Source: Lepidodermella squamata (lineage: Eukaryota > Animalia > Gastrotricha). Taken from it: a stretch of DNA of 64,000 nt. Location of the stretch: NCBI GenBank assembly GCA_047495785.1, contig JBLDXI010000054.1, positions 2,852,001 to 2,916,000 of the forward strand, in the 5' to 3' direction. Position 1 is the stretch's first letter; every line of letters starts with the position of its first letter. Positions 22,959 through 57,784 of the stretch are shown here, piece after piece. The translations under genes were made by a program, and so were the position numbers. A model generated the notes under the pieces. The model was not told the DNA's origin, ran no database searches, and saw nothing but the letters and a program-made list of their open reading frames with translations.

Positions 22959-24930
22959 TCAGAAAGACAAGTTGTTCATCGCCGCAGCGCTCGGCAGTGC
23001 CTTCTGATTTGTGATTCTCGAATTTTTCAATAAAGTGCTCGACAACAATGGCCGCTCCGCAACACTAAGATCGCCCTTCCGCAAAGGTGTCGCACCAATG
23101 AACTGTGACGGAGCCTCGTAGAACAGCTCACGAGACAGCATAACCTGCTCCATGCCAAGATTCTTCGCTGTTTTCTCAGCCAGCTTATTGAAATCGACAA
23201 AATGAACAATGTCACGTTGAACCGCTCGGCCAGAACTGTCGATCAGGGGATGATCGTCGGCGTCCAGCTTAACCATCTCGTCGAACGGGCCACGACCGAC
23301 GCCGACGATAATGATCGAAATCGGCAGGGAACTTGCATGAACGATAGCTTCAATTGTGGACTTCATATCAGTGATGTATCCATCCGTGAAAATTAGCAAA
23401 ATGAAATAATGCTTGTCGTCATTGTGTTCATGAGCTAGACTGTAGAAAATGGCAAAATAGTTAACAAAAATCGGTATAAGCGCTAAATTACTTGGCCACT
23501 AGGTTTATCATTGGGGATAGTTCGGCAGGTTCTTGCGGTATAATTTTCTTTGTTGCAGCTCGGTACGTCGACAGAACCTCTTCGACCCCAAAACAAGCCG
23601 GATTTTCTTGGTCTCCTGACTGAAAAAACACAAGACTAAATTGCCCAGAATGAGACTTTTCGAGAATTATACCAAAGCGAAATCGTGACGAAGTTCCATA
23701 GAAGGCGGAGCTTGAGCACCGAATCCATAGACAGGTAGGACTAATTCCGTCGAATCGTCGAGGGATTGGGCCGACTCAAGAACTGTTTTTATGGCGTCGT
23801 AATAAGGACCCTTTGTGTTCCTTCCGCTCCCCTCGATCTTGTGCAACCACATAAGGGTATCCGAAGAGCCATTGGACGCCGAAAAATCAATAGCAACAAA
23901 GTAATGCAAAGACGTTCCCCTGAAACAACGAAAAGCACGATCATCAGAAGAGGTCCATAGACCCTCCCAGGAGGATCACAAAGGTCCCCTAAAAAAATTA
24001 CCGGAGAAGAACGAAGTCCAGGAAAAATTCGTGGATTTCTTTTGAGATGCCGACAAGTCGCATCGTCATGCCATTGATCGACATGGGATAGATGTTGTCG
24101 GCACTGTTATCCGAGGCCAGTCTTCGCAGGTTGGTTTCCCGGCTGCAAATCAGCTTATGACTACCATTCGATTTAGCCTTCCATAGCGATAAATGCAAAG
24201 TTTTATCCTCATCGTCGGAGCAAAGCGAGAATCTTGTAATGTTAAACGAGTTCCAAAGTTGGTTCAACGACGTTTTAGCGTCATTTTTCACCGATATCTG
24301 CTCGCTTCGATAGACAAGCTGCTGCCGCCCCTCCATAGATTTTCTCAATTCGAAAAAGTAAGAAGCTGGTTGGAGTAACTTTGGCGGTGGTAAATTGTCG
24401 ATTCCGAAGCGAATGATCAACGAATCCCTCCGATTTTCAAGAACTTCAGCTGCGATAACTAGCAAACCTCGCGGCTTCGAATTGCCCTTCACAAAAATCT
24501 TCTCTTCATGAATTAGGAAAGAATTGAATTCGACAAGAGCGCTGAGGGCTAGTTTCGCCTTCCCGACCAAATTCTCCTTTTTGAAAATCGCTTTCTTGAT
24601 TGGGATAGTTGGCTTCCAGTCATCAACGTCCCAGACACGGAATTTAATCCTTTGCCGCTCGCCTGGGATGTAGCACACGCAGACTTTGGTCGAAAACTCC
24701 GGGTTCAGGTTGTCCCAAATGACCTCGGTACGGCCGATTTCTTTCCAGCGATCGGTTTTACACGTAGCACCCATATTTTCGATGTAAGCAACAATGCAGG
24801 CGTCGGTTTTCGAGAAAGTGTCCATGTTTTTGAGCTCGCGACAACTCAGCGTCATTTCAATGATGCATTTGTCGAGGCAGCTTTTCGGCATGCCGAAAGA
24901 ACTTTTCGATGGCACTGATCGGGTTAACAT
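22959..24930 (-). CDS. CPNE: Copine (C2-C2-vWA), paralog 1, divergent
   Basis: DTFSKTD...[14 protein letters not shown] (C2A); [31 protein letters not shown] (vWA); four exons. Confidence 0.92.
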
Positions 24931-25776
24931 CTTAAGCGTAGAAACAAAAGCTATAGAGCAGGTTCTATCGACATACGAGTTTTCAATTCTTGTTGTAATT
25001 TTAGATTTGGTGTCATTTGGCTTGCAATCTCATATCTTTTGCTGACCATCTGGCTCAAGCTTTACAGCATGGATCTCTCATCGAACTGAAACAAAGGCCC
25101 AAACATGTCGTAACATAACCGTACATACATGTCATAACGATGAGGGCTACTTTGGACGACACCATTATTTTCGGAGGTTGTAAATCGGATGTTGCTGGAA
25201 AAAAATCTGATTTTTCTGCAAATTTTAGGAATTTTCCAATTTTTATTAAATTTTTGGCAATTTGGAATTTTTCTGCAAATTTGGACAATTAGCAGTTAAT
25301 TTATTGACACTCATTTGCATATTCAGCGGCCTCATAAGTCTCTAAAGATTCGTCCATGATAAATAGGTCAAATTTATAATGAAAAAAAATTGAATAGAAA
25401 GGAAAATTGGAAATTTTCGAAATAATTTTCGAAAAACTCAATTTGAAAAGCCTTGAAATAAAACAATAACCTAAATAAAAAATACGTTCAATATTACGAA
25501 ATGCGTCTCGTGCTATTGTCTTACTCTCCTGTCAGCCTAGCTTTACGCCGAAAAATTAGGGTAAAATATTGGAAGAAAATCAGAGAAATCAGGCATTTCC
25601 ATTCCATAATCTTTCCAATTTTAAGCGAATTCTTAGGCTAATGAGTAATAAAAATAAAATATTTTTTTGAGACTTGAAAGATGAAATGAATTGAAACAAA
25701 AAGCACAGGTTGTATTTATTAGCTCAAAATATCAACTGAATTTAAATAGTCAATAGAGGCATTCATATAATTCAAA

Positions 25777-54843: not shown

Positions 54844-55948
54844 CTAGGCAAAAAGCAAAAGACAATCAACCTAATTGAAAAAAATATTTAAATGTAACTA
54901 GTACCTTTAATCGCAACGAGAATGAAGGAAGCTCGATGTAAAACACGCCTTTTGATTGATAAAAGGCCTATAAAAGAATTGTCCATTCTGTATCAAATGA
55001 CTTTCTTGAGTAAGTTGGAAAAATATAGACAGCATAAGTGCATAGTCACCACGACATTAGTATTTGCCACTAGCGTTTTGAATCTCTCGCTATTTTTTTG
55101 GTATACTATTTCCAAATCCCACCGGATTGTATATCAAAGCTACTTATTTGCGGCAAAATTTGATTAAGACGAGTGCATGAAGAACCGGACTTAGTAACAC
55201 GCTCGAATAACAATTCAAATAATATAATAGCTATTAGCACTGCCGAACCGACGCAATAGAAATAAAAGAAAAAATCACGGAAATGAACAAACGGCGCCAG
55301 GCATTAATTGAAATTAATCCAACTTGAAAATCGCAAAGTCAATCGTCAATAGCCGAAACGAAACAAACAAAACAAAAGAGTTTTATAGTATTCATGTCAC
55401 GCAAAATCTAGTGTTTACCGAAACGCCCACGACATGGCGCAAAAAACGATGATTCACAAGCTTATTAATATTTACAAGCAAAAATCATCAATGAATTACA
55501 TATACTGGGTCATCGTTGCATCGCATCATTTGTGTTCTGTATTTATTCACACGTCGCCTTCAGCCCCATCCTTTCATCGTAATCATCCCTCGCCATATAA
55601 AAATTGCACACAGTGCTTTGCGATCAAATCAGACGAGCGAGCGAGATGAATGGAAATACAATTGTAATACACATATTATATGTAAATAAAAGCAGCAACA
55701 ATATTTGAGCATGATCGATGCGTAATATTAGGGATATCGAGCAGCCACGGCGAAAAAGCAATCAAATCCTATATATCTTTTGAAAAAAAACGTCATTCGA
55801 TTTTTGTGAGTGCGCAAATACTCAACGGGACGTTTCATCTTAGTAAAACGCCACCTTAATCTCTATCTCGCCACAAATATATGGTTAAATACATCTAACG
55901 ATAACTATAAAAACGAGAATTCATAAAGCAAAATTGATTTCGTCAAAG

Positions 55949-57784
55949 TTAGCGCGGAGCCTGTCGGGAATCAGCACTGCTGGCCAACTTTTCCGGGGTT
56001 ATACCCATCTTTTTCATGTATGATAGGAATTGCAGCGGAATTTCGGCAAGAACCTCCCTAGAATAAATCACTCATCAAATGGGTCCTAGTTTTTCAGAGC
56101 AAAAACAAACTTGGCCAGTTCAATCTGAGCGATGGTCATATTACCACCAGCTTTTCGATAAATTTCCAGAAATGGCACAAACTGCACTATATCGCGTTCC
56201 ATTTTCCGCCCCCGAGAATCAACTAGCGGATTATCATCGGCGTCCAGCACGTTCATAGCCGAGAAATCGGCCTCGCCAACGCCCACAATTACGATAGAAA
56301 TAGGCAAACCACTGGCAGCAACAATAGCATCAGTGGTTTGGGCCATGTCAGTGATAACACCGTCGGTGATAATTAACAAAATGAAATAATTGCGACCGTC
56401 GTTGTGAACACTTGCAAATCTAACCAAAAGCTATTGATAAACAATCGCAAGATCTCACTGGCAATAATTACTTGGTAACGTGATTGATAACAGGGGCGAA
56501 ATTTGTCGGCCCATACAGGCGAACATTGTACAAGGCATTAGCATACGCAGCCATGACACCGTCTACACCCTGGCAGTAGGGATTGTTGGGGCTAAAATTC
56601 TGGCGACAACAAAAAAGTGGGATTAAAATGATAAATCGTTTTTCAAGTGCAAACCAGAAAAAATTCGTGGCTAACAGCCCAGCTTGGAGGAATTTGAGCT
56701 CCAAAGCCGAGGGCAGGGAACATTTTGTCGCTATCGTAGTCCTGAATTATGTCTAATACTGATTTCAGGGCAAGCTGGTATTGATTGTAGCCATTAGGAT
56801 TGATAAAATGTAATGAGTTTGGTTCATTAGGCTGGCCATTAGATGCAGTGAAGTCAACCGCCACAAAGCAATGAATTTGAACGCTGCTAATGTAGAATTT
56901 TGAAAAATATGAATTTCGAAGTCTCAAGATTGAACCTACCCGATTCTGATAAAATCTACGAAAGTAGCATGATTGCCTTTTGAAATGTGAGTAAGCTGGA
57001 AGACAATGCCCGAAGTAAGCTTTATTAGGTTGAAACCTGAGGTAGCGTTGTCTAGCAAGGATCGTATGGTAACATTCCAATCTCCTTCTTTTTCGTGTGA
57101 ACCGTTTGCCTTGTGTTTGTAAAGAGTTATACGCAGGTTACGGTCCATGTCACCGTTGCAGAGTGCCAGCGAGCTGACTTGAAACTGACTCCAGTCTAAA
57201 GACTTTTTACCGCCCAATACAGAGCTTCGGTAAACGAGGCTCATAGAATTGCTCTCCAAGGATTTATGTATCTCAAAAAAGTAGGAAGCGGTACCGCTGA
57301 ACCACGAAGACGGAATGTTTTGAGCGGAGAATCGTAAGGAGAATTCATCTTTGCAGGTTTCAAGTTCATCGACAACTATTTTGACAACTCCAGTGTTAGG
57401 TCTACCAGAAACCAACAAAGGTCTCTCGAAAGGCTTTATAGCAGAACTGCTGACTATTTCACCCAAGGCAACTTCAACGGTACCGCCTAGATAGTCATGG
57501 TCGGACATGTTCCGGCTGTTTGAGTCAATGTCATAGACGTCAAATTTAAGCATTTGACGCTCTTCGAACAAATAAGTCAGTCTTATTTTCTTCGCAAACT
57601 CGGGATTCAAGTTGTCGTTAATCACTTCAGTGCGACCAACTTCTTGCCAAGAGTTAGTCACCGCATTTTTCAAAGAAACCACACAACATGGATCCGACTT
57701 AGACAGGTAATCAGCATTAACAAGATCGCGGCATGAAATGGTCAGCTCAACTAAACTACAAGGAACCACGGTATTCGACATCAT
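55949..57784 (-). CDS. CPNE: Copine, paralog 10
   Basis: [28 protein letters not shown]; five exons; last exon [10 protein letters not shown]...APR*. Confidence 0.95.

Follow-up and report, generated by a model that had tools for sequence, protein, structure and literature searches.

In C2 domains, Ca2+ neutralizes an acidic pocket and thereby permits insertion into acidic membranes. To our knowledge, no copine structure other than that of Arabidopsis BON1 (PDB 6KXK, 6KXU and 6KXT) has been solved. In the copines that have been studied, Ca2+-dependent binding to membranes is driven mainly by C2B (PMC10968396). Departures from the usual set of Ca2+-binding aspartates have been described for a few C2 domains. 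In Dictyostelium discoideum CpnF, four C2A Asp are gone, three of them replaced by Arg, and membrane binding in vitro is mostly Ca2+-independent (PMC6048903). The C2A domain of Slp-4 (granuphilin) is without four of the five Asp and binds phosphatidylinositol 4,5-bisphosphate and anionic lipid independently of Ca2+ (PMC7857503). Here we describe a cluster of ten complete copine genes, A to J, on the minus strand of a 64,000-nucleotide stretch of Lepidodermella squamata DNA (contig JBLDXI010000054.1, positions 2,852,001 to 2,916,000; hereafter the window, in whose numbering coordinates are given unless another contig is named). The genes lie at ~22959-57784, and in all of them C2B has lost the canonical Ca2+-binding motif and carries a basic loop 3. 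The 11 peptide motifs quoted in an earlier note on this DNA all have exact matches on the minus strand, within 24154-57121.

We compared the cluster and its close relatives, which together form one clade, with these described systems. By sequence, the nearest named relatives are animal copine-8 and copine-5, the best named matches, which are 44-47% identical across C2A-C2B and into the first part of vWA. Conserved with copines 5, 8 and 9 are the order C2A-C2B-vWA, the C2A ligands, the framework motifs LCNGD and FLD[FY]I and, where vWA begins, DFT.SNG. The difference lies in C2B, where copine-8 and copine-5 have the canonical LDKKDFFGKSDPF and YDWDRDGSHD motifs and a polybasic cluster, whereas in the clade other residues have taken the place of all five Asp, Lys or Arg in three cases, and the cluster is deleted. 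CpnF is similar in that ligand Asp of a copine C2 domain have become basic residues, but there C2A is affected together with the loss of one C2B Asp, in one of six paralogues, whereas here the change is in C2B and in every copine of the genome. BON1 is the best PDB match by both sequence and fold, and its C2B loop 3, DFNSNGKHS, is not fully acidic either; in contrast to the clade, it keeps a canonical C2B loop 1 and the first loop-3 Asp and has no Lys or Arg at ligand positions. The closest match for the proposed working of the domain is Slp-4 C2A, in which most Ca2+ ligands are missing and lipid is bound through basic residues. It belongs to another family, with type I topology, and binds lipid at a lysine cluster on beta3-beta4 instead of through lysines at former ligand positions; the clade keeps one of two basic residues on beta4.

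To define the ligand positions, we used copine-6 D167, D173, D229, D231 and D237 (preprint 10.64898/2026.08.26.747421), numbered D1 to D5 below. The genes were aligned with vertebrate copine-8 and copine-5, a mollusc copine-8-like protein and an insect copine, BON1 was aligned separately by HMMER, and columns were counted over 16 clade members. In gene D, which was chosen for folding and as search query, loop 1 reads LPTGIFSSESSYF where the canonical sequence is LDKKDFFGKSDPF, and loop 3 reads WKRKDSGSHK where the canonical one is YDWDRDGSHD. D1 is acidic in none of the 16 members, being hydrophobic or Lys, and D2 in only one. Lys or Arg occupies D3 in 14, D4 in 15 and D5 in 14, and the Asp of 'LD' in C2B is Pro in 15. 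Taken per sequence, none of the five positions is acidic in 14 of the 16 members, and at most one is in the remaining two. The claim in the earlier note that the Ca2+-binding motif is missing from C2B of every copine in the cluster was thus borne out against vertebrate, mollusc and insect copines as well as BON1. Its description of C2B as charge-reversed holds for loop 3, with its Lys and Arg, and fails for loop 1, where Asp has given way to neutral or hydrophobic residues. Loop 1 had also been called shortened; we found it one residue shorter in four of the ten copies, of the canonical 13 residues in five and two residues longer in one.

These substitutions change the charge of the domain. 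Summed over the three top, membrane-facing loops of C2B, the net charge of the ten window genes ranges from +4 to +11, compared with -2 to +3, before Ca2+ binding, in canonical C2B. At the ligand positions themselves, the comparison set was 130 canonical C2B domains, selected for Asp at all five. The polybasic cluster of the NPKKKGKKKKY type that stands ahead of the last strand, and to which the copine review gives special mention (PMC10968396), is deleted in nine window genes; in gene G, an unrelated Ser/Asn-rich insert of ~40 residues occupies its site, as does such an insert in the metagenomic protein P0002, with lengths of 25-40 residues over the two. The earlier note had missed the deletion of this cluster, as well as the occurrence of the trait in two copines outside the window, the partly basic C2Bs found elsewhere and the published Asp-to-Arg C2 domain of CpnF. 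C2B alone scored 0-21 bits against Pfam C2 (cut-off 22), compared with 53-69 bits for canonical copine C2B, and annotation based on Pfam C2 overlooks such domains.

Despite the sub-threshold Pfam score, the domain can be aligned column for column with copine C2B. Misalignment of the loops was considered and rejected: the HMMER alignment to BON1, MAFFT and profile alignment agree on the register of NG[SK]H and of the framework residues on either side. An AlphaFold2 model of the gene D C2A-C2B region, built on a 34-sequence alignment, had a mean predicted local distance difference test (pLDDT) score of 91, a predicted template modelling (pTM) score of 0.70 and an eight-strand C2B, with the expected strands flanking loop 1 (~157-166) and loop 3 (~226-230). 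The best PDB fold match of this model was BON1 (E 5e-24), and the isolated C2B of BON1 (6kxt) also matched, with a template modelling (TM) score of 0.76 by target. Since all five ligands are replaced, canonical Ca2+ binding is predicted to be lost, and the conclusion that C2B is unable to bind Ca2+ via the canonical site is well supported by the alignments. Conserved Ca2+-binding Asp in both C2 domains serve as a criterion for copines (PMC10968396), and the clade does not have them in both. By homology its members are nonetheless copines, predicted not to be canonical two-site Ca2+ sensors.

We next consider whether the derived C2B is functional at all. It could be a relaxed and inert spacer with a decayed Ca2+ site and merely incidental lysines, as its non-synonymous rate, 1.2-1.7 times that of C2A, its score below the Pfam C2 threshold and the loss of the polybasic cluster along with the Ca2+ ligands might suggest. 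Synonymous sites (dS) are saturated in every pair of paralogues or orthologues; in the youngest pair, I and J, the ratio of non-synonymous to synonymous change (dN/dS) is 0.085 for C2A and 0.096 for C2B. The derived C2B is maintained under purifying selection, with dN/dS about 0.1, which speaks against a spacer. So do the Lys or Arg residues that 14-15 of 16 members keep where the three loop-3 ligands used to be, despite a mean identity of 40% among clade sequences and saturated dS, and the many invariant framework residues together with the model pLDDT of 91. Of all basic columns in the clade C2B, the former ligand positions are some of the best conserved. Because the substitutions are common to paralogues with saturated synonymous sites and belong to the better-conserved columns, they are not due to chance, and we consider an inert spacer very improbable.

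Instead, we propose that the rebuilt C2B is a Ca2+-independent, permanently cationic membrane module and that Ca2+ control lies in C2A, a reading deduced from sequence to which we give slightly better than an even chance. The rebuilding itself can be read from the sequence: in the ancestor of the clade, the two loop-1 Asp were replaced by hydrophobic or small residues and the three loop-3 Asp by Lys or Arg, and the polybasic cluster ahead of the last strand was lost. C2B would then no longer bind Ca2+ at its canonical site. Its membrane-facing tip would be permanently positive, resembling a normal C2B in the Ca2+-bound state, with the electrostatic switch fixed 'on'. This positive tip, together with the aromatic tip of loop 1 and the Arg on beta4, would bind acidic phospholipids or phosphoinositides without Ca2+. 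Ca2+ regulation, where any is left, would sit in C2A, whose five Asp are all present in the majority of paralogues, while a few lack some or most of them. Ca2+-independent binding of anionic lipid by C2B is plausible from the loop charge, the aromatic tip and the beta4 Arg, and by analogy with Slp-4 C2A and CpnF. The aromatic tip of loop 1 is retained in the clade, and the equivalent of copine-6 R192 on beta4, a phosphoinositide-binding residue (preprint 10.64898/2026.08.26.747421), is Arg in all 16 members.

Several observations weigh against this proposal. The equivalent of copine-6 K197, the second basic residue on beta4, is basic in only four of 16 members; judged from the alignment, the clade has lost rather than gained some of the surface that normally contacts anionic lipid, namely the K197 equivalent along with the polybasic cluster. 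One clade member from the same genome, L025 (contig C54), has neutral loops with a net charge of 0 and a loop 3 reading WKYSEDGKNK. Because the loop set of L025 is neutral, positive loop charge is not universal in the clade. In addition, the basic tip could serve protein or intramolecular contacts instead. It might, for example, latch onto the acidic loops of C2A, or onto vWA, and come free when C2A binds Ca2+. Genes A-E and G, with five C2A Asp, would present an acidic surface adjoining the basic one, and the model pTM of 0.70 suggests a defined arrangement of the two domains. For copines 5, 8 and 9, a tightly bundled arrangement of C2A and C2B is predicted, and copine C2 domains join in Ca2+-dependent as well as Ca2+-independent protein interactions (PMC10968396). 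A latch on C2A would not explain why genes F and H, in which C2A is degenerate, still have basic C2B loops, and an aromatic loop-1 tip with an invariant beta4 Arg is typical of lipid binding. On balance, we consider such a contact surface unlikely as the explanation. A broader version of our proposal, in which the entire copine repertoire of the lineage has a C2B that is a 'permanently Ca2+-bound mimic', either a constitutive tether or a basic latch on C2A released by Ca2+, with Ca2+ control moved from C2B to C2A, seems doubtful to us; were it true, those paralogues whose C2A is degenerate would be independent of Ca2+ altogether.

The state of C2A differs between paralogues. As the earlier note had stated, its Asp are kept in most copies and degenerate in two. 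All five are present in genes A-E and G, three of five in gene F (exon 45191-46048), and at most two of the five positions are acidic in gene H (exon 29905-30930). Genes I (exon 26998-27966) and J (exon 23998-24930) keep four of five and have a basic insert of 7-8 residues in C2A loop 3. 'Graded Ca2+ sensing via C2A', as put forward earlier, is only descriptive, a restatement of the five, four, three or at most two Asp that each paralogue appears to keep. Two side observations concern the related paralogues I, J and L025. The C2A domains of J (24466-24930), I (27478-27966) and L025 (its positions 6030-6485) contain in loop 3 a Lys/Pro-rich insert, WKPT..KK, of 7-9 residues, and SDP has changed to TDA in C2A of all three, with the fifth Asp gone only in I and J.

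To determine how far the trait extends, we searched the 121-Mb assembly for copines, both with PF07002 and with a canonical copine. Twelve copine loci were found, ten in the cluster and two elsewhere, and the two outside loci share the derived C2B, with LKRYRSNGSHKK and LWKYSEDGKNKM as loop 3. Neither the PF07002 search nor the canonical-copine search detected a canonical copine in the assembly. Directly upstream of the eleventh copine (L024 3154-4822, contig C42 of the same genome, G000) are two open reading frames (ORFs) of 229 and 317 residues, the second with a long Gln/Pro repeat, which look like a mobile-element insertion. Outside the genome, the nearest relatives are the environmental-assembly proteins P0001, P0002, P0128 and P0218, all of which have a basic C2B. 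They are encoded on contigs that preserve the gene order of the window: environmental metagenome contigs L001 (ENA ERZ27333047 k141_255107), L002 and L003, from a related organism, carry a myotubularin-like gene, at least four copines, a Sec1 gene and an oxidoreductase gene in that order.

In the tree, the 12 genomic and five metagenomic sequences formed one clade of 17 (Shimodaira-Hasegawa-like approximate likelihood ratio test, SH-aLRT, 97, and 100 in a second run), and the distinct copine subfamily that had been suggested is thus recovered as monophyletic. One-to-one orthologues were G/meta4, D/meta3, C/meta2, B/meta1 and H/P0218, and the sister relationship of G and meta4 had an SH-aLRT of 99; gene G is the orthologue of metagenome protein P0002. 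This protein (625 residues) is intron-free, and its orthologue gene G matches in three pieces and so probably has introns. Because there are one-to-one orthologue pairs, the switch and most of the duplications are older than the split of the two organisms. The tree and gene order indicate a lineage-specific copine clade that expanded by old duplications, mostly in tandem, after a single ancestral rebuild of the C2B pocket. The clade itself branches in a polytomy with invertebrate and vertebrate copines. Tandem copine expansions are also known from a bivalve (PMC10729735).

From the 16 derived C2B domains we built a profile and ran it exhaustively against 1.84 billion representatives. With multi-C2 repeat proteins set aside, the metagenomic orthologues of the clade scored 175-195 bits and the next single-domain match 115 bits, below which canonical and other C2Bs were mixed. 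No close relative of the derived C2B beyond these orthologues was found among the 1.84 billion representatives, and in the literature we found no description of a copine clade with a lysine-substituted C2B. A basic C2B that belongs to a known widespread clade, which the earlier note had named as an outcome that would speak against it, is therefore not what we see: 175-195 bits for the clade's own orthologues fall to at most 115 for anything else. Among the retrieved copine domains, the combination of no acidic and at least three basic ligand positions is confined to this clade; one further domain fits it, from the multi-C2 repeat protein P0139, but only two of the basic residues there are at loop-3 ligand positions. 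A word-index search with gene D C2B, a method insensitive by design, gave nothing beyond the metagenomic orthologue and a single weak match, and a protein-atlas look-up of C2B gave generic C2 clusters only. That protein searches brought up no close relative with a name is in keeping with a phylum of which little has been sampled. Single exons were searched by reference, and the only full-length protein used was the intron-free P0002. The proteins at the top of the profile search, P0122-P0127, are 1000-3600 residues long with 6-23 tandem repeats resembling copine C2B, and reached that rank through summed weaker stretches. Pfam found C2 repeats and nothing else in P0123, P0127 and P0131.

Degenerate or partly basic C2Bs do occur elsewhere. 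The Tetranychus urticae 'copine-8' XP_015787074.1 and its paralogue have lost the ligands, carry Lys at D3 and D4 and fall below the Pfam C2 threshold in C2B; loop 3 is CMKYKMSGAHTL and loop 1 is LGTSCFTKRSTF. A word-index search with the Tetranychus C2B, again insensitive by design, recovered only the second mite paralogue and canonical copine-3. C2B is degenerate in Nymphon striatum and Basidiobolus meristosporus, degenerate or partly basic in Rhizophagus clarus and Paraphysoderma sedebokerense, and partly basic in Paramecium sonneborni. A group of transcripts from Logan assemblies (P0143, P0147, P0149, P0162 and P0165) has a C2B loop 3 of the form CYDxRSNGxHKL. Together with the mite sequences P0270 and P0274, these CYDxR sequences form a supported clade of their own, annotated 'copine-8' or not at all.

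This raises the question of whether the clade described here is part of an older and wider group with a degenerate C2B that is shared with arthropods, namely the Tetranychus 'copine-8' and the CYDxRSNGxHKL group. Both have Lys or Arg at D4 and often at D5, and a tree uniting them on C2A+C2B was not rejected and had the higher likelihood (approximately unbiased test, p-AU 0.63). When C2A alone, which is without the trait, was used, the best tree separated the two groups, although their union was still not rejected (p-AU 0.36). Fast evolution in both groups also makes long-branch attraction likely. In the mite group, D2 and D3 are for the most part still present and the pattern varies, and the mite-type C2B is itself narrowly distributed. 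The Tetranychus proteins differ further in their separate supported clade, in having two rather than three basic ligand positions and in relatives with varied patterns. We therefore regard a shared origin with the mite group as rather unlikely, somewhat less so than the contact surface discussed above, and the degenerate, partly basic C2Bs of spider mite, fungi and ciliate appear to have arisen independently of this clade.

The window consists of eukaryotic DNA whose introns are short and whose G+C content is ~42%. Each copine gene consists of a large exon 1 encoding C2A and C2B, followed by two to four short exons encoding a copine-type vWA domain. In tblastn searches, the canonical mollusc copine P0012 covered residues ~12-540 of its 558 in each of the ten genes, and its vWA part (residues ~290-540) was matched in all ten. 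PF07002 matches lay downstream of every C2A-C2B exon, reaching up to 284.9 bits (cut-off 27), and C2A passed the Pfam C2 cut-off in nine of ten genes. We considered pseudogenes and rejected them, as all ten genes have full copine length and stops are confined to short GT..AG introns.

From 57784 downward, copines A-G (to 41201) are followed by a Sec1 gene, an oxidoreductase and copines H-J (30930-22959). Gene A (55994-57784) has C2B at 56939-57388, its loop-3 motif at 57092-57121 and all five C2A Asp; its exon 1 scored 60.6 bits against Pfam C2, and tblastn with P0012 covered residues 12-539. In gene B (53158-54843; PF07002 284.6 bits), C2B is at 54007-54450 and loop 3 at 54157-54186, and a GT..AG intron of ~66 nucleotides (GTGCGA...TATATAG) follows directly after FLDFIRIG. 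This post-C2B intron, noted in the stretch 53972-54007, is in frame and includes a TAA, which leaves two abutting ORFs, 53968-54843 and 53158-53967. Gene C (51026-52897; PF07002 284.1 bits) has C2B at 52076-52516 with loop 3 FKKKSNGSHR at 52223-52252. The gene D C2B (gene 48297-50676) is at 49828-50277, with the loop 3 given above at 49981-50010, and the BON1 match has an E value of 2e-39. Gene E (46271-48006) has C2B at 47158-47610 and loop 3 at 47308-47337, and its loop 1 is the copy that exceeds the canonical length by two residues. Gene F (44291-46048) has C2B at 45221-45670, loop 3 WQAKTNGAHK at 45374-45403 and a degenerate C2A loop 1. In gene G (41201-43645), C2B extends over 42656-43225, with loop 3 AYKKNGSHK at 42929-42955 and loop 1 at 43118-43159.

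The spacer between genes A-G and H-J (35910-40469, minus strand) contains, by Pfam, a Sec1-family gene at 37961-40469 and a pyridine-nucleotide-disulphide oxidoreductase exon at 35910-36578. Beyond it, gene H (28652-30930) has C2B at 29908-30357 and loop 3 WRRRRNGVPVK at 30061-30093; its start codon is uncertain, and a Pfam C2 search of its exon 1 gave no match. Gene I (25777-27966) has C2B at 27007-27477 with loop 3 WKSKGNGKHK at 27160-27189, and gene J (22959-24930) has C2B at 24001-24465 with loop 3 WKAKSNGSHK at 24154-24183.

The idea that a copine C2 domain can lose its Ca2+ site has precedents, and the cluster opens no new kind of system. It adds to the scattered cases of CpnF, spider mite, fungi and ciliate, and points to repeated loss of Ca2+ binding in copine C2 domains. 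In conclusion, this genome presents a natural experiment, in which the C2B Ca2+ pocket is lysine-filled in every paralogue and the C2A site is kept, partly lost or fully lost. The resulting proteins are ready-made for testing the electrostatic-switch model of C2 domains, and for testing how Ca2+ sensing and lipid binding are split between copine C2A and C2B.

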